From contig JAHLWZ010000590.1 of NCBI GenBank assembly GCA_020536535.1, positions 42,147 to 106,146 of the forward strand: a stretch of DNA of 64,000 bases, given 5' to 3'. Shown one piece after another: positions 26,239-61,806 of the stretch. The notes below the pieces were generated by a model. That model searched no databases. It saw nothing but the letters and a program-made list of their open reading frames with translations, and was not told the DNA's origin. The stretch is from Pelomyxa schiedti. Lineage: Eukaryota; Protista; Evosea. The translations under genes and the position numbers were made by a program. The number at the start of each line of letters is the position of its first letter. Position 1 is the stretch's first letter.

Positions 26239-27053
26239 ATGGGTGTAGTACGTTTGGTGTCGGTTGCCGGCGTTGTGGCGCTGGTTGTTATTGTGGGACT
26301 GAGGGCTGCGGAGGGGGCGATGCCGACCCCAGTCAGTGCCACGACGGCGAAGCAGTACTTGTCAACCCTCAAAGTCGAAGCCGAGCACTCCAGGGACGGT
26401 TACGACAGGGACCTATTCCCTCACTGGATAAAAATAGACGGTGAGGATCCTCCTCTCCTTTTCCCTTCTCTCTACACGACTTCGTTTTATGTTTTGTGTG
26501 TTCACGCATTAACAGGGACTTGTGATACGAGGGAGACAGTGATGAAGAGGGATGGGAAGAATGTGGTGACGGACTCGGCGTGCGCTGCCACGAGTGGCAG
26601 CTGGTACTCCGAGTACGACGGGGAGACGTGGACGTTGGCGTCGGATCTCGACATCGACCACGTAGTGCCTCTGGCCGAGGCCTGGGACTCTGGCGCCGAC
26701 ACCTGGACAACTGCCCAGCGCCAGAATTTCGCCAATGACCTTACTCGTCCTCAGGTATTTTATTCTTTTCACTGACGATTAATATCGGGCGAGTAAAACT
26801 AAAAAAACCTAAAAACAGAACAAACCCGACCCAACTAACATTACCTTTTTTACAACAACAAAAACAGTTGATTGCTGTGACGGACAATGTGAATCAGTCC
26901 AAAGGAGACCAGGATCCTGCAACTTGGTGGCCTCCCCGTACTAGCTACAAGTGCACCTATGCCCGTGCTTGGGTGCAGGTCAAGTACTACTATGGACTCT
27001 CGGTGGATTCTGCTGAGAAAACAGCTTTGAACAATCAACTGGCTGGTTGTTGA
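26239..27053 (+). CDS. Secreted HNH endonuclease, DUF1524/actinobacterial type; two introns
   Basis: Signal peptide, then GYDRDLFPHW, CDTRETVMKRDG, DIDHVVPLAEAW, FANDLTRPQ|LIAVTDNVNQSKGDQDP and YARAWVQVKYYYGLSVDSAEK. Confidence 0.9.
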
Positions 27054-27151: not shown

Positions 27152-30100
27152 TCAAGGGAGAAGAGAGCTGCACTCAAAGGTGAGGATGTCATGGCACTCT
27201 GACAGGCCACCAGTTGCAGCAGTGAATCCTATCCAAGCGGTTGTGGAGTCTCCAATCACCTTTCGGATATCAATTTCCTTGCGTAACACTACTTGCGAGT
27301 CCAACCACACAACAATCTATTGTGATTTTAGTTGAAATGCTTTGTGTGGCACAGTGGAAAACAGACCAAATTTTGATAAAGAACCACGCGAACAGTGTGT
27401 GGGGCCTGATCTCTGAGGTTTAGAATGTCGGGGTTACAGGCCAAGGAAAACCGATGTGATGCTGAGTTCGGGCGATCGAAACAAGTTTGGAGTCTGAAGT
27501 GTCACTAAGTAATTGGGCCTGTTGGTGTTGAGTTGAAAACAACATACGAAATGTGGTTGTCATTGGGATCATCATATGTATCTTGATTGCAATAAGTATC
27601 AAACTCCACAGCAACGCTTTAGAGAGTGGACACGTCAACAAACTAAATAGCGAACATATAACCTCTTTGGAATGCCATCTTGAAAAGGGTGAGTGAGTTG
27701 GAGCTATCAAAAGAGACTCACGATATGCAAGTCCGCCACCTCCCTCTCCTATTGTATTCCCCCCCTGTGCTTGAATGACAAAGGCAAATCCATCAGCGCC
27801 AGGTTGAAGTATTTGGAACCTGGCAAAAAAGTTGGTTTGCCTATTGGATGGAGTTTCCATTTTACTTGAAGACAGTTTCGATGCCTCCTGTAAGTGCGAT
27901 AGCATCAATTTGATGCCAAAGGGCACCTCTAGCCGAATTTTGCTTTCCCGTAAGTCTTACTTTGGATTGAACCAGGGAAGTACATGCAACCTAAGGCACT
28001 TATTCAAAGGAAATAATAAAGGAAATACCGGTACAAACTCTGAGGGAAATAGCGCTGGTGCAAAGATGAATAAGGGTAGTTTATGCAGGCCATCTACTCC
28101 GTGTTACAATATCGAAAAAAATGGAGGGAAATACTTGATGGATCAGTCTGGTCAATGGGAACTCCTCCATGCTCGTTCCGCGACCGTTTCCATTCCTCAG
28201 AACCTGCATTTTGTTAAAGGAATACCTGTTGAGAATATTCACCAGAAATTCTGCCAACGGTATCTCCCCCTCTGGGGCCCAAGGTTCCCTCCAGATCTTT
28301 AATTTCACTTGCTCTTGTGACGTCGAGAACAGCTCTATTTTTCAGTTTAGAAGCGATGGAATACCACCCAATCTCCAACTTTCTTGCTGAAGTGACAGAG
28401 GTTAATAGTACGGTATTTGTTGACAATAGGAAGGACTGCAGCCAGGGTTCTCCGGCAAGAGTACGTCTGGTTAACACCTCGGGAAAGTTTTCTGTATATC
28501 TCCGGGTAACATCAACAACCTCATCCACAGCAAAAGCAAAAACATATGTGAGCTTCTTTTGCCATCCACGTTCATACATAAGGGGTTTATCAAATGCTAT
28601 GGGATGAATTTCAGGACTAAGTCAAAGGGGGTAGACACAGACCTGATTCACAGCAATCACAGTGAACCCACCTCCCAAGAGAATCACTGTAAATTTCAGC
28701 CTGAGGCACGTTAATCAAGACTGGGAGTAACGGAAATTACCCAAACGTGATCGGTGAAATCCAGAACGTATCTGGAATTGCATCCAAGAGACCTCAATAT
28801 CAAGCAAAACGCCTTCAGGGCTTCAGTAAATCCCCAGAAAAAGGGAGGAAAATAACATTTGCCCATTCACCACAACGTCCCTTTCTTGTCTCCAACAGTT
28901 TTCCAGGGTGGTTGTATCGCGGAAACCGTGTGATAACTTGGCAGGTAGAGCAGCGGTATCTTGCGTCTGTCAGCATAAATTCGAGAATTATACACACAAT
29001 TCTACTCTGCCGGCCATGCCTTGCATTTCAGCCTGTGAGGGTTGTCCCATCCCAGCTGCAGTAGTCTTACCACCACAGCGATCGCAAGGTGGCTGATCTA
29101 CCCATGAAAAGAACTGCGTTTTGAACCTGAAAAAAAGGAAGTCCTCATTATAATACTGGAAGGACAAGATACCACTTGAGAAGTTCCACTACAAAGCCAT
29201 CTTCTGGGCTTGACACATTTGGAGTTGTCTTTGCGAGTTCTTGGAGGACATCAACTGGCACTAGTGATCGGGCTTTTTGTTGTAATGCTGGTTGTTCATA
29301 GAGCTTCATTTGCTCTAAGCTATTTTTTACTCTATTCTTTATTTCAACAGAGGCTCTGGCACCCTGCAGCTACTGAGTGATGGTTCAAAAAAAAAAGAAT
29401 AAAATCTGATATACCCTCATTAGTGATTCACTCATTTCTGAAAGGATGCTGCGTTGAACAGGAAGTGGTGCGCCAATACCGGTTACCCTGAAACCATCAG
29501 CAAGTCATGGCGGAAAAATGGACTTACAGTGGTAGGAAAAGGCAAGTTCCAATCTCCCCACACTGGCACACGGCAGGCGAACCTGAGTTATCGTCGATTG
29601 TAACACTCCCTTGATGACAGGCGTGCTTGCATCCAAAACAAATTCTATTCTTCTGTCAACATCCAGGAGATTATTGGGAACACACTTCCTGCCCTGAGTC
29701 AGAAAGATTGGTTGTCGGATTTCCTCAAAAGGAAAGAAAACTCTACTACAAGTGGATTGCCAGTCTGTGGACATTGCAGGAACTGTACATTGCTGTGTCA
29801 TAGGAACAGAAGAGGGTGTAATAGTCTCTGGTGTAGCTACAGGGGCGGAAGTGGAAGTTGTAGCATCAGAGATTGATGACTTTGGTCCAAGTAATATGAG
29901 GTGCTTTCCCTGTGTCCAGTTAAGGGAGGAGAGGAAAGAAAAGGAAATAAACAAACAGGTGTGATTCCACAAGAATTGAGATTGTCTTCATCATTCACAG
30001 TCCCCTTCAACCCTATGATTTTCTGGTCCTCTGGTGCCACTGTCGTGAGCGCGTATAATTGCATCTAATGTATAAGGTGCATCTCACTCCAACAAGAAAA

Positions 30101-30257
30101 AGCAAGAAAAAAAATAGTAATGTACCTTGAACAGCAGTGCTACTTCATCAGTGTCCACTTCCAGGTCATATCTGTGAGCACAATGAGACACAATCCGGAT
30201 CTATGCACTTTACAGTACTTTGTTCCTTGGTGTGACAACAACGGGTACTTTTGGCAT
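27152..30257 (-). CDS. NGLY1: Peptide:N-glycanase with N-terminal ubiquitin-like and C-terminal legume-type lectin domains; multi-exon, first exon uncertain
   Basis: [36 protein letters not shown]. PNGase triad GRCGEWAN / FTDHVW / WVHCD, plus RISGSEEWK. Lectin motifs [16 protein letters not shown]...DPNDNHI and [11 protein letters not shown]. Confidence 0.85.
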
Positions 30258-30397
30258 GTGTGTATTGACTCCACGCAGGGTAATTAGTTATGTCAACTTC
30301 ACAACTTTGACACGCAGCACCGAGTTCACCGGAAACGAAACGGCTTAGAAAAGAAAAATAGAAACCGTGCTCTTCTGAAGTTTGTTCTTTAACTCCG

Positions 30398-32266
<1,869 letters not shown>

Positions 32267-35710: not shown

Positions 35711-37621
35711 ATGGCAACTTCCCGTTCTTCATTAACTTCTCGCGTTACCACGGAACACGATGGGCTTGATTCCCACAATTACGCATGCTCATCTCCCCCT
35801 CTGGTAGTAGGTCCTGTAGGTAGGCAATGCGTCAGGGTTGGATATGGTTATAATGCTGCGAGAGATGAGTTCCATGACTTGAGCCCTTGGCACTCTGATG
35901 CGCTACGCTCTAACATCCAAACTGAGCCCATGGACACCATTGAGACATCCTTGGAAATTGAGAACAAGTTGACAGACCGCCTCAAATTCATGCATGTGTC
36001 AGCCGAGTTGCAGCTGTCTGTGCTTAGTGGATTGGTCAAGGTTGAAGGAGCTGCTTCGTACCTGAATGAGGATTTGTCCAGTTCCCAAGTGGCTAGAGTT
36101 GTGTATTCTATAGATGCCACAACAAAGTCAGTCTCTCTTACAATGGACCATCTTTCTGCAATCCAAGAGAAGGGGGTCGTGTCCCCCGAGAGTCCCATCA
36201 CCCACATCATCACAAGTGTCATTTATGGAGTCAAGGGAATTCTTGTCTTTGAGATGCAAGTTGATAAGAGTCACACCAAAGAGGAAATTGAAGGAAGTTT
36301 GAAGCTTCATGTGGAGAAGTTTGCTGCTTTCAGTGTGGATGCAAAAGCTGATGTTAGCATCCGCGACCACAGTTCTATTGATGCAAGTAAAATTACAATT
36401 CACTTATCTGGGGATATCATTCCAACCACACCTGTAACCACATTCGAGAGTGCCATTGCAATGATTCAGAAAGACTTTACTCGTGAAAATATTGTCGCTT
36501 GTGCACGAGCTCAGACTTTGCGGTTGACACCAAAGGAATCTTTTATGACCACTCAGTCAATTCTGTACCATGAGATAAATGCCACATTACGTGAACAAGT
36601 GGTGGAGGTTATGTCAGAGTACCGATCTCTAAAGGTAGAGATTCAAGGTCTGGCTGAACGGTGCCGAAAAAATCACATACAACCTGTTCAAAGCACTGCT
36701 ACAATTCTTGTTGCAGCTGTAGGGGGTGTAACATCTTTTCTTGCACAACAATTACAGTCCCTGCTACCAGAGATCAGGAAAAACCCAGCTAAGTGTTCTG
36801 TACTTCAGGAACTACTGTTGAAGGTTAGGAAGTCTGCCTTTGGGCCATCCCGCCTGAGGGATTACCTTCAAAAAGCTCTAAATCAATGTGTATTCATACT
36901 GGAGGGCCTAATTCAACCTGACAAGCCCACTGCAGAGCAATTGGAACCAACAGAGCTTTCAACTTTAACCTGCCGGCCAGACCCTGCATTGGTGTTGGTG
37001 CTCTACATTCCCTCAACAGATGTCTACCTTACAGCACTTCAAACTGCAATGCTCACCTGTGACTATACCATGGCTTTTGTGGCCACTGGTCCAGTTGCGT
37101 GGCAGGAAGACAGTGCCTTCAAGTGTGCTGTAAAAGCAAAAAGAGACTCTCTCAAAGCAACTCGTACACAAAAACCCATGAAGCACTACCTGTGCTTTAA
37201 AAACATGGTTGACTCACTCACCAGTGCTGTTGAGGTGACCAGCCCCTCTGTTGAACTTGTGTTGGTGAAGGATTATACAATAACAAGGAACTTGGACACA
37301 GCCTCCATGGTGTCAACGAATGTGCGGGTTCCAACACAGCCTGGTACCATAATACTCTATCAGGGGAACACTCCACCCCCAGGTTATCTTGCCTGCAATG
37401 GAGCACAGATCAGCACAACAGAATACCCTGAGTTGTTTAAGGTTCTGTGCCCACGGTGGTCTGGCGAATTGCCTGGCACATTTTCACTGCCACAGTACGA
37501 CCCAATCGACACTGGTCGGTGTTGTGAGTGTATGTTCAGGGTCTGGTATAAGTTCAGTGACATAACTCTTGGCAGAGGACAACTCTGTGACTCTTACGTT
37601 TTCTATGCTGTGGCCTTCTAA
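35711..37621 (+). CDS. Stonustoxin/verrucotoxin-like MACPF/CDC pore-forming protein with C-terminal phage tail-collar domain
   Basis: Single open coding exon. SNTX-like motifs GPVGR..VGYGYNA, HVSAELQLSVLSGLVKVEGAASYLNE, THIITSVIYG, EEIEGSL and GDIIPTTPVTTFESA. Collar motif PGTIILYQGNTPPPGYLACNGAQISTTEYPELFKVL...TFSLP at about 37340-37490. Confidence 0.85.
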   Translation: MATSRSSLTSRVTTEHDGLDSHNYACSSPPLVVGPVGRQCVRVGYGYNAARDEFHDLSPWHSDALRSNIQTEPMDTIETSLEIENKLTDRLKFMHVSAELQLSVLSGLVKVEGAASYLNEDLSSSQVARVVYSIDATTKSVSLTMDHLSAIQEKGVVSPESPITHIITSVIYGVKGILVFEMQVDKSHTKEEIEGSLKLHVEKFAAFSVDAKADVSIRDHSSIDASKITIHLSGDIIPTTPVTTFESAIAMIQKDFTRENIVACARAQTLRLTPKESFMTTQSILYHEINATLREQVVEVMSEYRSLKVEIQGLAERCRKNHIQPVQSTATILVAAVGGVTSFLAQQLQSLLPEIRKNPAKCSVLQELLLKVRKSAFGPSRLRDYLQKALNQCVFILEGLIQPDKPTAEQLEPTELSTLTCRPDPALVLVLYIPSTDVYLTALQTAMLTCDYTMAFVATGPVAWQEDSAFKCAVKAKRDSLKATRTQKPMKHYLCFKNMVDSLTSAVEVTSPSVELVLVKDYTITRNLDTASMVSTNVRVPTQPGTIILYQGNTPPPGYLACNGAQISTTEYPELFKVLCPRWSGELPGTFSLPQYDPIDTGRCCECMFRVWYKFSDITLGRGQLCDSYVFYAVAF

Positions 37622-37800: not shown

Positions 37801-37875
37801 AATCCCTTTTTGGGATTCCTTTTTAGTCATCAATCGCCACTTGGCGGCTGGCCGCCTGGCGGGTCCCCCTGTCAA

Positions 37876-38214
37876 ATCACTTGGGACCCATTGGGGGAGG
37901 GGAAAAAGTCCAACTGCGACCTCATTGGGGGAGGGAAAAAATCACTTGGGACCCATTGGGGGAGGGAAAAAAAGTTGGGGCCTGTGGGGAGGGGGAAAAA
38001 AGTCTGTGGAGTGCTAGCAGGTGCTGGTGAGTGCCGGTGAGTTCTGGTGAGTGCCAGTGCCGGTAGTGGCTGGAGGTGCCGGTGAGTGCCGGTAGCAGCT
38101 GGGGAGTGCCGGTGAGTGCAGGTAGCAACTGGGGAGTGCCGGGCTGTGCAGGTAGCTGCTGGGGAGTGCCAGTGTGTGCCAGTGAGTGCCAGTGAGTACT
38201 GGGTGGTGCTGGTA
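37876..38214 (+). repeat. Two adjacent G-rich degenerate tandem arrays
   Basis: About 4 copies of ttgggacccattgggggagggaaaaa (37876-38001), then gagtgccggt-type 10-mers with a ~30-nt higher-order unit ggggagtgccggtgagtgcaggtagcagct (about 38010-38214). Confidence 0.8.
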
Positions 38215-39110
38215 TCTATTCTAAATAGTGTGTGTAATTTAACAATGTGTTTTCAGGGTTTACCTGGGGGGAACTGATAGAAACTCAGAGACACCTACAT
38301 GCCAGAACTCAGTTGGACAGAGAGAAATGTTGGTTGGAAGTTGAGTGGGAGATCATTCAATGCCAAAATCCTAGGTCCTAATTCTCCAACTGAGGAAGAA
38401 GATAAAGATGGCACAGTTTCTGTTGGAATATCAATTGGTGTTAGAGCAGCACCCAAGTTGCTCAACTCTTGCATTTGGGCTTGAAGCTCTGGTTGTTCCA
38501 ACAAACTCTGAAAAAAGTCATCTTTTTGTTCACAAGTTGAAAAAGCAACAGAGTAAGAGAGAGCTGTTGAAATCACTTGGAAACATAAATTTCGTAATGT
38601 TTCTGCTACCTCAGTACATGTGCAGTATTGTTTTTGGGCACTGGAAACTTTGAGAGATTCAACCAAAGCAGTACCTTCTTGTGGTTTTTTTTGAGGCTGT
38701 TGCAGTCTGTTAGAGGGCTTCTTTAATGCTTAATTAGTGTAAGTGTTATGTCACTTACTTTGGTAGTGTGGGTTTGTAGCTCTTAAAGGTGAAGGTGCAA
38801 CAAGAAGAAGGTGATTGTCTGGGTTATTAATGAATGAGACAGAGAATTTTGTATTGTTGTTTTGCACAACCAAGTTTTTGTGTACAACATGGGGAGTGTG
38901 TGACCATTGTTGGGGCAGTCGGTAACATCAGAGAAGTCGTGTCGCACTGTTGCTCTGTGATTGGCAATGCCAACCCACCGGAAATGGAATCCAAAAAAAG
39001 GAATTTTTCCGCGAAAAAAAATCAACGGCTTTTTTGACCTGGCGGATTAACGAGAGTCTGCTCTAAGGTGGTCCGGAATGTCAGGGGACGAATATGAGGT
39101 AGAGCACCCA

Positions 39111-39624: not shown

Positions 39625-40460
39625 CGATGTGGGCGTTTATTAATTGGACAAAAAAGGTTTAATGGTAAAATGGGCCATGGGGCCAGGGTTGCAGCTGGTA
39701 CTGGTCTGGATGGATGGAGTGTTGGTTATAGAGGGTGTGGGTGTTACTGGTGGCAAAAGTGGGTGGGTGATTGAGAAAAGGTGTGTTTACTGGTGGCATG
39801 GAGGGTGGGATTGTAAGTGAATTTGGGAGGTATGGTGGCTGGTTCATCTGGTCTGTTTGGGCATTCTAATCCTAATGCCACCCGAAACTCTCGTTCTGCC
39901 AAGTGTGGCGGTAAGTTAGAAGTATGGTGCAGATAGAGTTGATTGAGTTGCACAGCAGACTTTTTGATGGTATTTGGTGATGCCGGCAGAACATTAAGGG
40001 CCTTTAGAGGATTCAACTTAATTTCTGCTCTGAGGTTTTTAAGGTGGCTACATGAGTATAGGATGTGCTTGACACTTTCAGGTGAGTCACAGCCATGCCT
40101 GCACATGGGGGACACCTTTGAAAAGTGGGCTCTTTTGTTGTTCAGACATCGGATGTTAAGGGCAGTGCACATTGCACTGTTTCTCACAGATGGATTCAAG
40201 CCTGGCACATTCAGATTTTGCACCATGGTGTACCAGTGACTTGATGAGAAATGTTCATGCATGTCTTTAGTTTCGTGTGGAGGGGTTTTTGAGATCGTCT
40301 TTTCATGAGTTCTTTGAAATCTCAGATGGACTGGTTCCCTCAAAGTCCAGTCTGATACAGCAGCAATAAAGCTTAGTGGAGTAGATCTGGGGATTGAGCA
40401 GGGATTTTTCCTGTTGGGGTGTCGGAACGCTGCCACTGCTATGGCTCTATTCCATTGGTA
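39625..40460 (-). mobile_element. 5'-truncated non-LTR retrotransposon remnant (C-terminal zinc-binding region)
   Basis: The ORF contains CRHGCDSPESVKHILYSC, the C..C...E(S/T)..H....C motif typical of LINE ORF2 C-termini. AATAAA lies downstream on the - strand. No RT core is visible. Confidence 0.6.
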
Positions 40461-40507
40461 CATATAAGCCCGCGAACGCCCAATCAGGCTACCGTGACAG
40501 CATATAT

Positions 40508-41050
40508 AGTACAACAGAGGCTATTGTTACATTTGCAGCAAAAACACCCTTCCTTCTTCTTCTTCTTCTGGTAGATAATACAGGCGGGGGAATTGCCTCG
40601 TGCTCAGCACCACCCTCACTCAGTGAGGGGGAAGAGGTTCCCCCCAAGCCGCCTCTCTATTGCACAGAGAGGATAGTGCTAAGTGCCTGCTATCAGAGTC
40701 AATTCAATTAATTATTAACCACGCTACTTACTTTGTTGACATTAACAGAACATATAGGGTGCATCTGGATCAGCAAGGAGCATTTGGAGCAGTGCTTGGG
40801 AGTACATTTGAGAGCGGGTGGTGTGCATTTTTGGGAGCATTTTGCGGAGCGGAGCGGAGCGGAGCGGCGCATTTGGGAGCTGGGGGAGTTTGGGTGGGTC
40901 TGGCAGCATCAGTCATTTTGGGGATAGCCAGCAGCAAAGCAAGCAAGCAAGCAAGCAGCATTTTGGGGCATACAGAGTACAACAGAGGCTATTGTTACAT
41001 TTGCAGCAAAAACACCCTTCTTCTTCTTCTGGTAGATAATACAGGCGGGG
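40508..41050 (+). repeat. Pair of ~80-nt direct repeats (40508-40590 and 40976-41050)
   Basis: agtacaacagaggctattgttacatttgcagcaaaaacaccctt(ctt)nctggtagataatacaggcggggg occurs twice, differing only in the (ctt)n tract. Confidence 0.9.
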
Positions 41051-41249
41051 GGGTGGTTACCTTCATCCCGTAGTGGCCGTAGTTGCTGGAGAAAAAAAAC
41101 GGTTTTTGGTTCCTGAAAAATGAAAAACCAAGTAGGAACCCTTCGGCTCCCACAATTCATAAAGAGGAAAAATGTTGGAGGAAAAAGCCAGTCAGTCAAG
41201 ATTTCCCTGACGAGGGAAGCTCCCATGGTTCGCAAAACAACCAAACAGG

Positions 41250-42137: not shown

Positions 42138-43807
42138 ATGGCAACACAGATGTATGGAGACGTCGCAGCCATTACAGGAGAGGCACGCTTTGAGTGCGCA
42201 GACGCTGTGACCGTGCGCATTGCTGCTGGTGAAGGACGCTGGTTGAACGTGGGTGTTCCAACTCTCCTTCTTTCGTTTTTGTTCTGTCAGTGCCGTGCTG
42301 TTGATTGATGTTTGTTGTTTTGTGTGCACACCCCACCCTTTGCCTTTTTTTTTCCCTTGTGTGTTGTAGTCTCTTCTGGAATTTAATCGTTGTCAACAAT
42401 AACAGATTATCAGTGCCACTTACGGAGGGGCAAATCCAAATAGGGATGTAACTGAAGCCATACGTAACCTCGTCGTCGACGAATCTTGGATCCATGTGGA
42501 AGGCGGAATTCACACCCGCATTGGAGACCCTGAACCAGGAGTTCCAAAGAGATTGGTCATTAATTACAAGTTCCTGCCCATTGAAAGTGAGATGAAAGTC
42601 TTCAGGTGCCACGACGGTGAGACTGTAGACATTACTCCACCAGAAAACTATATCCTCCATGTACAAAGTTTCCAAAGAAACTCTCTTGAACTAACATGAA
42701 CACCTCAGATTCTCCATGCTACATATGGCGGGGGGTTTCCAAAGCGCCAAGTCACATCCAAAGTAGCTGCTCTGGTCACTGGTACTGGCATCCACGTCAC
42801 TGGCGGCATACATACACGCATTGGAGACCCTGAGCCAGGCGTTCCCAAGACTCTGGTAATTTTCTACAAGTTCGTGGTATCAAGGAAGAAGTTCTTGTTC
42901 TTCGGATGCGCAGATGCCGAGCCTGTTTGCATTGTTGCTCCATCTGGATATACACTCAATGTTAGCTGTTCCCTCCGTTTTTGTTTTTCCAATGTGCGAT
43001 TCACTCACTCTGTCACAGGTCGTTGAGTCCACTTATGGAGGTGATGAACCAAATCGTGACGTTACGGCCTCAGTCCGAGCTTTGGTACACAATAGCACCG
43101 AGATTCGCGCCGAGCACGGGGGCATTCACCTTCTAATTGGAGACCCCGAGTTCGGCGTTCCCAAGACCTTCAACGTCACTTATAAATTCCTTCCTGATGG
43201 ACGCTCCCACGAGGAAATGGAATTCCACTGCGTCGACGGCGAACCAGTGCACATCCACGCGCCTCAAGGGAAGGGCCTCCAGGTACATTCATTCCTCGTT
43301 CTTCGTTTGGTGTCTCCAACAAACAACATGTACAGATCACCAACGCCACATATGGCGGAAACAATCCATCCCACGACGTCACTGACCTGGTATACGCCAT
43401 CGTCCAGCACAACGACTCCATTGATGTTGATGGTGGAATTCACACCCAAATTGGTGACCCAGAGCCCGGCGTTCCTAAGAAGTTCGTACTCCATTACAAG
43501 TTTGTAGCACTGCCGCTAGAAGCAGCATTCACTTGCGGTGACTTTGAACCTGTTCACATTGCTGCCCCGCATGGCTATTCCCTTCAGGTTCACTTCCTTT
43601 GTTTCCTTTCCCTACGGTGACCCAAATCAGATTGCACGGGCAACCTATGGTGGGCACAATCCCCAGCGTGATGTCACTGATAAAGTGTCTGCACTGGTTT
43701 CTTCGGGGGCAATCAATGTTGATGGTGGAATTCATACCCAAATTGGGGACCCTGAGCCAGGAGTAGGCAAGAGGCTCGAAATTCTTTACGCATTCGTTCA
43801 CTTATGA
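42138..43807 (+). CDS. Five tandem SUEL/rhamnose-binding-lectin-like domains, no signal peptide; six exons
   Basis: Repeated unit FxCxDxxxVxIxAPxGxxL|IxxATYGG...DVT..V..LV...GGIHT.IGDPEPGVPK.L...Y. Five phase-0 introns at 42249-42405, 42661-42708, 42961-43018, 43283-43335 and 43588-43630. Confidence 0.8.
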
Positions 43808-59424: not shown

Positions 59425-61806
59425 TCAAGAGGGGGTCCACACTTCAATATCACTGACCACCCATGAGTTGTATGTTCCAGCAAGGTATTCAGTTGGGGGG
59501 TTGTGTGGCGGTTGCTCGCAGTAACTGTGGTTCACGTTTGCGTAGCTGCCTATTCGTGTGTTGCTGTTGTTGCAGATGTGCAAGGAGTGTCCACCACCAT
59601 ATGTTGGCCCATAATCACAGTTGCAACAAATGCAGTAGTTATGGTCTCGGCACCTGAGGATTGTGCCTGTTGTGGTTCCGGCACGAACAAGGCTGTATAC
59701 AAAAGTGTGTCCCTCACACCCTCCTGAATAGCCGGATCTGCCATCAAACTGAATGTTTGTGTATCCTCCACATATATCTGTGCGTGTGTTTGAATGTTTG
59801 AAAACGGGAAATGAGAACACACAGTTTGTTGTGGTCCTGACAATGGACAGCGTTGGGGTGATGTTGTTGCACAGTTCATGGAACTTCACACCACCGAAAC
59901 CGTGGTCTGATCCACGCCACAGCAGCCGCCACGTTGTGTTCGTCATCTTGTGGCCCATGGCACCCTCCGCGCCGACAACCATCTCGTGCAACTTCTTGTC
60001 GAGTTCAGGGGTCGTGAGTATCTTGCTTCCTGGGAATGCTCTGTGTGCAATATGTGCAATGTGAGTTGGGGTGCCTGGGTTTTTTTTGGGAAGGAACACA
60101 CACCCCTCAACAACAGGAATGACGAGAGGAGACCCAACGATGTGGACGTTGTTGAATTTGACTGTGAGAGTGTGATCACCAGTTGGACTCGGTGTCATTC
60201 TCACTGTCATGTGTCCTCGTCCTTGCTCCGCGTTCTCCTCCATTAAAATCTTGGTTGCTGTCCCATCATTCCCTGGGCTCTGAATAAACGGTTGGGTTAT
60301 TACGGGATGAATTTGGCACAAAAGAAAAAGAGGGAGGGAGGAAGGGGGAGAACCGAGCAAGAACAAGTGAGTCCCGATGTGCACGTTGAGGGTTTCCCTG
60401 TTTTGTCACACACTTGTATTGCTGCAACAACAATCAGCTCATTTCCGAGGCATATTGGCCCTGTCCCTGTTCTCACAATCTTGCTTTGTGTTGCATCAAC
60501 TGTCGTGTGTTTGGTTGTTCGTTATTGTTTAGTTTCATGGTATGCGAGGCCTTGTCTTGTGGAGTGAGTGAGGCAGTGGGCTTTTGATATTATTAATATG
60601 TGCTGGGGAAAAGGAGAACCTGGAGGAAGAACCTGCAAGTCCCTGATGGCGGTGGAAAGGTGACTGCAGTCAAGTGGTGATTCCTCGAGTTGCGTTGATG
60701 CATGTGGAACGAGCATGCTCCCACTTAGGAATTGTGTTGCCAGGTTTGCTGCATGAATGGCAACAACTCCAAGACTCACGAATCCAAACGGATCTTCTTC
60801 CTTTACTCGCTGCGTGGACATATCAGCACATGAAATCTGGAACACAGTAAGAATTCTAGACAGAGAGACCGGTAGAAAAAGTCTGATGGCACTCAAGTGT
60901 TTAACACACCCCACACTTCACAGATGAGACTTGGCCATCAACAGATTTGATTTGTGCCTCCAGTGTGCAAGCCTTCATGCTTTGCTTTCTTTCAACAAAC
61001 TCACACAGCTCGTTCTGCTTTAGTTCCAGAAGCTTGTGCATCTCACTTATCTTGTGAAATATTTAAGGGAGCAAGAATAAGAATAAGAAGTTGTGTGACA
61101 AACTGTTTCTTTGATGGAGTTGCATTGGTTCCTTGTTTCCATTTCCGTTTCCCCTTTGTTTGTTTCAAGCCGTGACTTGAAAGCCTGACAAAAAAGAAAC
61201 CACAGTGAATTGTCCCAACGAGATTGAAAAAATGCAGACCATCAACTCATCGACGCACTGCAAAAGATAATCATTTTTTGACCGGAGTTGCGGAACAATC
61301 AGGTTCCTCCCTTCCTCGAGATCAACGCACTCGTGTTGTCTGTGCTGGTTGACAAAAAGAGGGTTACGTGAGTGGTGAATTTAATTGCAGTCTATTCTAC
61401 ATTCTCATGAAGGAGGAAGAAGAAGGAAGGGAGGAGGCACATACAGTGCCGATAATGAAACACTTGTCACAGATAACTTCATTGCATTGCTTGCAAAAAA
61501 GTTCCCGTTTTTCTTTCTTGTGGATCCTGCAGTACTTTGGTGAAACTTTTGATCCATCCACCACAGGAGTGCTTCCCATCAAGGAAACAACCTCATGTGC
61601 CTTGAATGCTGGCAGTGCGTGCAATTTGTTCAAATGTTTCGAGCACAGCTGGTGCAAAATCAGTTGGAAAAAAGAAAGAAAAAAAAAGGGGGGAGAAACA
61701 AACCAATCCGCAAGTTTCACACTTGAATGACGCAGGCCTCTCTTGACACATACTGCAGAGGCTCCCCTCTCTGGTCCCACATGCACCCTCACCGTTTGTT
61801 TGTGAT

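Follow-up and report, generated by a model that had tools for sequence, protein, structure and literature searches.

Within the perforin superfamily, the stonustoxin (SNTX) branch is one known from animals. In MACPF/CDC proteins two helical clusters refold into membrane hairpins, and in SNTX the domain of this type is succeeded by a helical domain, by a thioredoxin-like domain that lacks a CxxC motif, and by a C-terminal module, which in the fish toxin is a PRYSPRY domain. In phage fibers, HxH motifs contributed by three chains make up a metal site located on the axis of the trimer, and T4 gp12, which carries such a motif, binds lipopolysaccharide (PMC6116203, PMC8760310). Here we consider a gene in which these two kinds of protein are joined. 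It lies at positions 35711-37621 (+) of a 64-kilobase (kb) window (the whole stretch of DNA that was analyzed, 64,000 nucleotides of contig JAHLWZ010000590.1, assembly GCA_020536535.1) from the anaerobic free-living archamoeba Pelomyxa schiedti (PMC8887013). A preliminary description of this DNA had proposed that the gene codes for a stonustoxin-like pore-former in which a phage tail-collar domain stands in place of the B30.2 domain. In the explanation that we favor, with a probability of roughly 0.6, the gene is nuclear and intact and belongs to an SNTX-type family in which the collar replaced a SPRY-type domain, the fusion was then duplicated, and the product would act as a pore-former directed against prokaryotes.

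The gene and its pore-forming scaffold

The gene falls inside the longest open reading frame (ORF) of the window and runs for 636 codons plus a stop, from an ATG at 35711 to a TAA at 37619-37621. The ATG at 35711 is the first in frame and the second comes only at codon 74; since that codon already lies within the conserved region, translation is best taken to begin at 35711. The deposited gene model (protein label P0001) is the identical single exon, so that ORF and annotation agree on a complete single-exon coding sequence at 35711..37621 (+), with the collar codons included in it rather than spliced out. The absence of introns amid intron-bearing neighbors, which make up most of the genes of the window, had been remarked upon in the preliminary description, as had the lack of a signal peptide; both remarks are borne out, with neither a signal peptide nor a transmembrane or hydrophobic segment being found in the protein. 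A GTGAGT-like site in the tail was considered as a potential splice site and set aside: it is unused in the deposited model, and the tail shares the last-strand motif of a paralogue.

A phmmer search against the PDB recovered only the two stonustoxin subunits, alpha and beta (4wvm_A, E 6e-18; 4wvm_B, E 1.4e-17), matching residues 30-309, a likeness to SNTX that, as judged by sequence, stands well above chance level. An AlphaFold2 model built on the aligned sequences of 64 members of the family has a mean predicted local distance difference test (pLDDT) score of 80 and a predicted template-modeling score (pTM) of 0.76, being confident over residues 30-530 and of low confidence in the N-terminal 24 residues, in a linker at 534-551 and in the tail at 596-636 (pLDDT ~30). 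When this model was compared with the PDB by Foldseek, 4wvm_B and 4wvm_A were again the best matches (E 2e-23, 514 and 509 columns), followed by perforin-like and cholesterol-dependent cytolysin structures (E 7e-5 to 1e-3). The structural alignment to 4WVM has an identity of ~17%, and with 509-514 columns its length suffices to include the MACPF/CDC, helical and thioredoxin-like domains. Thus, the N-terminal SNTX likeness first proposed from the reading of motifs is recovered both by phmmer and by structural comparison, and the MACPF/CDC fold is present in the model.

The SNTX-type MACPF/CDC domain occupies residues ~30-290 (35798..36580, +), as delimited by phmmer, Foldseek and the core motif, of which the TH..YG..F, GD and P positions are retained. 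The canonical MACPF family (PF01823) is absent among the Pfam matches of the protein at E<=1, and the relation to it is seen by fold alone. Within the domain, the model places two helical clusters: TMH1, a predicted membrane hairpin at residues ~84-125 (35960..36085, +; model helices at 87-119), and TMH2 at residues ~186-230 (36266..36400, +). Both display the alternating hydrophobic pattern that membrane hairpins would have; nine of the 12 strongest beta-amphipathic segments, including the single strongest one, are in TMH2, with the other three situated just before TMH1.

The helical (SNTX "FAT"-like) domain follows at residues ~291-400 (36581..36910, +) in the form of four long model helices (291-399), and then comes the putative thioredoxin-like domain at residues ~401-535 (36911..37315, +), a confident beta-alpha-beta module (pLDDT 83-94) that contains the LVLVLY... 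strand quoted in the preliminary description and, like its SNTX counterpart, is devoid of CxxC. That these two regions correspond to the SNTX domains is suggested by the fold, both being included in the match to 4wvm, but less so by sequence, with the helical domain scoring below the Pfam cut-off and the thioredoxin-like segment having neither a Pfam match (Thioredoxin_11) nor a PDB match of its own. Taken together, residues ~30-530 constitute an SNTX-type scaffold with its MACPF/CDC, helical and putative thioredoxin-like domains.

A family of paralogues with a variable C-terminus

A word-index protein search with the full-length protein returned only the query, and the relatives discussed here come from an exhaustive HMMER search, which yielded 1749 representative proteins at E<=0.001, 500 of them reaching E<=1e-10. 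Its top four matches, counting the query itself, belong without exception to P. schiedti and are borne by four contigs of 59-126 kb. The first of the three paralogues, Pelo_5043 (P0002, a "hypothetical protein" of 614 amino acids), is 40% identical to the window protein and is likewise encoded by a single exon on a different contig. The second, KAH3762262.1 (P0004, 788 amino acids), has SPRY as its C-terminal domain (Pfam E 1.6e-9, with PDB matches to TRIM SPRY domains), and the third, KAH3745119.1 (P0005, 646 amino acids), has been named "Stonustoxin subunit alpha". The GenBank name of KAH3762262.1 (L004:4001-6475), "NADPH oxidase 4", is unsupported by its Pfam or PDB matches. The genes for P0004 and P0005 have single-exon bodies and only small introns near the 5' end, making the entire Pelomyxa SNTX family intron-poor.

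In a neighbor-joining tree of residues 30-400, which is distance-based with a midpoint root and hence indicative only, the four paralogues form one clade apart from the rest, with the window protein pairing with P0002 and P0004 with P0005. This clade is not nested in any animal group, while the named relatives beyond Pelomyxa are all from animals (fishes, turtles, tuatara, frog, shark, rotifer and nematode). P. schiedti thus possesses at least four SNTX-type paralogues, which in the favored explanation make up a small lineage-specific family with a constant scaffold and a variable C-terminal aiming domain.

Such variability is widespread in the family. Among 64 members, the C-terminal module is FN3 in 33 and the collar in two (both from Pelomyxa), with SPRY/PRY, an AIG1 GTPase, jacalin and others also being encountered; a galectin module is additionally seen in a fish array. 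The latter is a 2668-amino-acid gene model of Prochilodus magdalenae (L003:3001-50345) in which three SNTX-like units follow one another, every one bearing a galectin domain; the gene caller has probably fused the members of a tandem array. In Pelo_5043 the collar is joined to the scaffold at the same junction as in the window copy, that is, where SNTX and P0004 carry SPRY/B30.2. No SPRY/PRY match is found in the window protein and the collar is there instead; a swap of the targeting domain, as originally proposed, is therefore the right reading, and it is one more case of the general C-terminal modularity of the family.

The same architecture was sought in a space of ~5.8 billion proteins along with metagenome and viral contigs. 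Among the top 150 matches of the exhaustive search, only the two Pelomyxa proteins combine SNTX with the collar; none of the 26 matches of a length-matched search seeded on the collar has a MACPF family; and pattern scans of the JGI metagenomes and IMG/VR, which were narrow and of limited sensitivity, gave collar-only matches. Provisionally, the architecture is thus absent outside Pelomyxa in the databases searched. A search of a literature library likewise found no paper linking stonustoxin with the tail collar, or SNTX with amoebae or Pelomyxa, and none in which the accession of the assembly is cited.

The collar domain and its erosion in the window copy

The collar of the window protein is recognized by the Pfam phage tail-collar family (PF07484) at residues 545-596 (37343..37498, +) with 46 bits against a cut-off of 24 (E 5e-12), covering profile positions 1-52 of 57. 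In a separate model of the C-terminal 131 residues, the collar core exceeds a pLDDT of 90; the core and the last collar strand together fall between 77 and 95, with values below 50 in between, and the last strand docks on the core. Foldseek matches this model to T4 gp12 (probability 0.96, E 0.18) and to phage collar proteins (E 1.5e-4), some of which belong to Cafeteria roenbergensis virus and Orpheovirus. The remainder, residues 597-636 (37499..37618, +), is a shortened Cys-rich stretch in which only the last strand can still be recognized when it is aligned to the paralogue and to 30 relatives from prokaryotes.

Relative to Pelo_5043, the window copy aligns to the start and the very end of the domain, of which it retains the first third and the last strand, with ~50 intervening residues absent as in-frame gaps, and both proteins end in an identical last-strand motif. 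When 32 columns conserved at >=80% among 18 prokaryotic relatives are taken as the yardstick, Pelo_5043 keeps 29 of them and the window copy eight (seven in the first third), and the distance from the first conserved column to the C-terminal end is 92 residues in the window copy as compared to a median of 151. No counterpart is left of the conserved loop behind the core, of the HxH motif or of a conserved C-terminal motif. A hidden 3' exon or a frameshift holding the lost part was considered and rejected, with no trace of one in any frame across the whole window. The loss of these motifs excludes canonical trimeric HxH-metal binding for the window copy. The claim of a C-terminal tail collar accordingly stands in so far as PF07484 scores well above its cut-off, but what is present is only a part of the domain seen in the relatives.

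The extent of this loss is the principal ground for an alternative, in which the window copy is a decaying or subfunctionalized duplicate that has lost its aiming domain, with the working collar gene, if there is one, being Pelo_5043. This we consider somewhat unlikely, though deserving of serious attention. In its favor speak the loss of 24 of the 32 conserved collar positions together with the ~50 residues, the tail pLDDT of ~30, and the GC content at third codon positions (GC3), which is at background in the window gene (0.45, against an overall GC of 0.47 for the window) and below that of the paralogue (0.70) and of the actin (0.75) and Sel1 neighbors. However, the 636 codons have been maintained with neither a stop nor a frameshift, the last collar strand persists and, in the model, is packed against the core, and a bona fide homeodomain ORF nearby has a similarly low GC3 of 0.49. 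Moreover, the identity between the window copy and Pelo_5043 is 53% in the MACPF domain as opposed to 35% in the helical domain, 37% in the thioredoxin-like domain and 42% in the collar core. The MACPF domain is thus the best conserved part between the collar paralogues, a pattern in the two sequences that argues for a lasting constraint on the pore-forming domain.

Age and origin of the fusion

The complete form of the collar is best seen in the C-terminal 161 residues of Pelo_5043, which make up an entire MdpB or tail-fiber-type domain that shares, across 90% of its length, 37-44% identity with stand-alone proteins of 180-260 amino acids, those among them that have a name being called "tail fiber protein [bacterium]" or "microcystin-dependent protein". 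A profile of both Pelomyxa collar domains finds the phage short tail fiber 9cuy (E 6.5e-10) as well as T4 gp12. Sequences related at 30-44% identity are spread over hundreds of genomes from many bacterial phyla, and are also present in a few archaeal metagenome-assembled genomes (MAGs), in phage contigs and in one giant-virus MAG. The collar thus derives from a tail-collar domain of the MdpB type from a prokaryote or phage. No specific donor stands out, none being closer than 44% identity, and a link to the symbionts through the donor was also sought to no effect: MAGs of Methanomicrobiales and Methanoperedens (L043, L014) and of Geobacter (L006), from lineages akin to the methanogen and deltaproteobacterial symbionts of Pelomyxa, come in at 36-42%, no closer than many unrelated bacteria. 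Collar proteins are also found in giant viruses of protists, namely, Cafeteria roenbergensis virus, Orpheovirus and GVMAG-M-3300021074-6 (IMGVR). It is conceivable that such viruses were the route of the collar into the amoeba, although their identity is not above that of the bacterial relatives.

The preliminary description had suggested that the gene might be the product of a recent transfer or of retroposition. An intronless gene in a genome with a mean of 7.43 introns per gene (PMC8887013) could be taken that way, as could the intron-poverty of the Pelomyxa SNTX family throughout, the restriction of its other named relatives to animals, and the prokaryotic or phage origin of the collar. 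Against this, the fusion is common to paralogues that are merely 40% identical and lie on different contigs, and is therefore older than a deep duplication and not recent. The four paralogues form their own clade instead of falling within animals, neither a poly(A) tract nor a flanking (target-site) duplication was seen at the ends of the gene, its composition resembles that of the host background, and no donor exceeds 44% identity. A recent horizontal acquisition or retrocopy thus appears improbable. An old transfer into the lineage is compatible with these data: the intron-poor family would fit an old transfer or a retrocopy at the family root, the alternative being patchy vertical descent.

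A further concern arises from the material, the assembly having been made from the amplified DNA of single cells, in a culture that was both polyxenic and polyeukaryotic (N50 51.5 kb; PMC8887013). With the SNTX family being otherwise from animals, including rotifers and nematodes, one might suspect that the fusion is a chimera of whole-genome amplification or that the DNA is that of another eukaryote in the culture. However, the same junction is present on two diverged copies on separate contigs and is therefore not an amplification chimera; the four contigs, at 59-126 kb, all surpass the N50; the neighbors are rich in introns; and the actin in the window scores highest against entries named "Major actin", above animal actins. 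An artifact of either kind is accordingly extremely improbable.

Proposed function and points against it

P. schiedti, as the preliminary description had supposed, is a phagotroph and is host to prokaryotes: Candidatus Syntrophus pelomyxae and Candidatus Methanoregula pelomyxae are free in its cytosol, and Candidatus Vesiculincola pelomyxae resides in vesicles (PMC10579272). The combination of a module of the phage-fiber type with bacterivory and cytosolic prokaryotes points to prokaryotic surfaces as the target. In the favored explanation, the SPRY-type domain would have been exchanged for a collar of the MdpB or T4 gp12 type on the branch leading to the window gene and Pelo_5043, and the fused gene would have been duplicated thereafter. 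The soluble protein, lacking a signal peptide, would bind the target membrane through its C-terminal end and then oligomerize, whereupon the TMH1 and TMH2 clusters would refold into beta-hairpins and give rise to a pore. The likely targets would be prokaryotes eaten or housed by the amoeba. The window copy might operate with a remodeled C-terminus, or else jointly with its paralogues in the manner of the SNTX alpha/beta heterodimer. Oligomerization, hairpin insertion and choice of target by the C-terminal module are all put forward here by analogy with the MACPF/CDC and SNTX literature.

Several observations weigh against this explanation. The window protein falls short of the Pfam models for both MACPF_SNTX (PF24674, 19.1 bits) and Stonustoxin_helical (PF21109, 19.0 bits), the cut-off being 27, although its paralogue P0002 does pass that of PF24674 with 36.1 bits. 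Further, it keeps 37 of the 72 positions conserved in animal SNTX-like proteins. The aiming function of the window copy is doubtful, for its aiming domain is largely gone from the sequence, and the idea that the protein is aimed at bacterial surfaces is correspondingly weakened for this copy, with its eight of 32 positions and no HxH; Pelo_5043 is the better fit. A GC3 near the genomic background, with the paralogue at 0.70, fits weak expression or relaxed selection, with which it is compatible but of which it is no proof. Finally, Pelo_5043 itself (L002:6369-8347) has an annotated ORF that starts within the MACPF domain, with the homologous upstream codons in another frame. This could be one frame change, either real or an error of single-cell assembly. 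By this evidence neither collar copy is demonstrably intact throughout, the window copy having an ORF that is open throughout and the full scaffold, but a short aiming domain.

The partial conservation also bears on whether the scaffold forms pores at all. It might instead have been put to a non-lytic role in signaling, trafficking or housekeeping of the symbionts, as would be in keeping with the absence of a signal peptide, with the retention of only about half of the SNTX-conserved positions, and with a review that includes perforin-like proteins with non-pore functions among its subjects (PMC5483515). Yet the TMH1/TMH2 arrangement with its alternating pattern is as in membrane hairpins and the TH..YG motif of the core is retained, rendering a non-lytic role distinctly unlikely.

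Carrying the pore-forming explanation further, one may speculate that the amoeba builds a set of anti-prokaryote pore-formers by fusing the SNTX-type scaffold with a receptor-binding domain of phage or bacterial origin, and that the versions with the collar, with the shortened collar and with SPRY kill prey or police Syntrophus and Methanoregula, in the cytosol or at vacuoles, and that the shortened collar is re-specialized as opposed to dead. In this specific form the scenario is unlikely and is offered tentatively.

The contig and neighboring genes

The neighbors of the gene in the window include a PNGase-like gene with lectin domains, F-box, NPR2 and B-box/filamin/TLD genes, the homeodomain ORF and the actin. 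When the latter was compared with solved structures, entries named "Major actin" and "Actin-1", which we take to be those of Dictyostelium and Acanthamoeba, scored above animal actins, a weak but consistent indication that the contig belongs to an amoebozoan instead of to prey. Upstream, a gene of 208 amino acids at 26239-27053 (+) codes for GmrSD_C (DUF1524), a nuclease domain of prokaryotic type. Its span exceeds the coding length, so that an intron seems to be present, and it may be an old bacterial acquisition. It is followed at 27152-32266 (-) by the PNGase-like gene, of 1008 amino acids, in which PNGase-type domains (transglutaminase core, Rad4) are found together with L-type lectin domains. 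Two genes at 46456-end of L001 and 59428-60384 (-) possess B-box and/or filamin together with TLDc domains, and one at 42138-43807 (+) is composed of five units of ~300 nucleotides with a repeated GGIH..IGDPEPGVPK-like motif and a faint match to DnaJ-like_C11_C. A scan of the window against Rfam gave no match.

Downstream of the SNTX-like/collar gene, adjoining tandem arrays at 37874-38225 are made up of 31-nucleotide units (~3 copies) and 10/30-nucleotide GTGCCGGTGA-type units (~18 copies), in agreement with the repeats reported earlier. The retroelement remnant reported along with them is unconfirmed. The only long downstream ORF, 39744-40514 (-), codes for 256 amino acids (239 in the deposited model) with a Cys/His-rich stretch and matches no Pfam family at E<=1; it may be what had been taken for the remnant. 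A direct repeat of ~90 nucleotides is seen at 40500-40590 and 40968-41051, its copies being 96-100% identical and ~465 nucleotides apart.

Comparison with known systems

The above observations extend an SNTX-like family with exchangeable aiming domains to a free-living anaerobic amoeba and present a natural instance in which domain shuffling has brought a eukaryotic pore-former together with a receptor-binding module of phage. The nature of this module points to prokaryotes as a possible class of targets for SNTX-like proteins and yields candidates for effectors by which cytosolic symbionts might be controlled in a well-described consortium of three partners. They also prompt one to ask whether the family came to Pelomyxa by an old transfer or by patchy vertical descent.

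The closest parallel is with the SNTX alpha/beta subunits of Synanceia horrida (4WVM), which by fold have the same order of scaffold domains, equally lack a signal peptide and belong to a family whose members vary in the C-terminal module. The Pelomyxa protein departs from the fish toxin in its amoebozoan host, in an identity of only ~17% over the structural alignment, in scoring below threshold with the Pfam SNTX models, and in the collar that takes the place of PRYSPRY; and whereas toxicity and the heterodimer are known for SNTX, the Pelomyxa protein is known from its sequence and model. Nearer at hand, Pelo_5043 has the same fusion and junction, with a whole collar and the HxH motif but an annotated ORF that lacks the beginning of the MACPF domain. 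P0004 and P0005 have the same scaffold, fall in the same clade and possess small 5' introns; P0004, with SPRY instead of the collar, has the architecture of fish SNTX.

On the side of the collar, the core is akin to that in T4 gp12's receptor-binding domain (1OCY), in 9CUY and in the MdpB proteins of 180-260 amino acids, with the difference that in Pelomyxa it is fused to a eukaryotic pore-former and, in the window copy, is without the middle and most of the end. A functional analogy might also be struck with Perforin-2/MPEG1 of animal phagocytes, a MACPF pore-former that is among the fold matches and is thought to act on engulfed bacteria, even though it belongs to another MACPF subfamily, is membrane-anchored, takes the secretory route and has no homology beyond the MACPF core. 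Thus, while the pore-former family is a known one, the union, in an amoebozoan, of SNTX with an aiming domain that derives from phage is a new combination, whose function we infer to lie in the encounter of the amoeba with prokaryotes.

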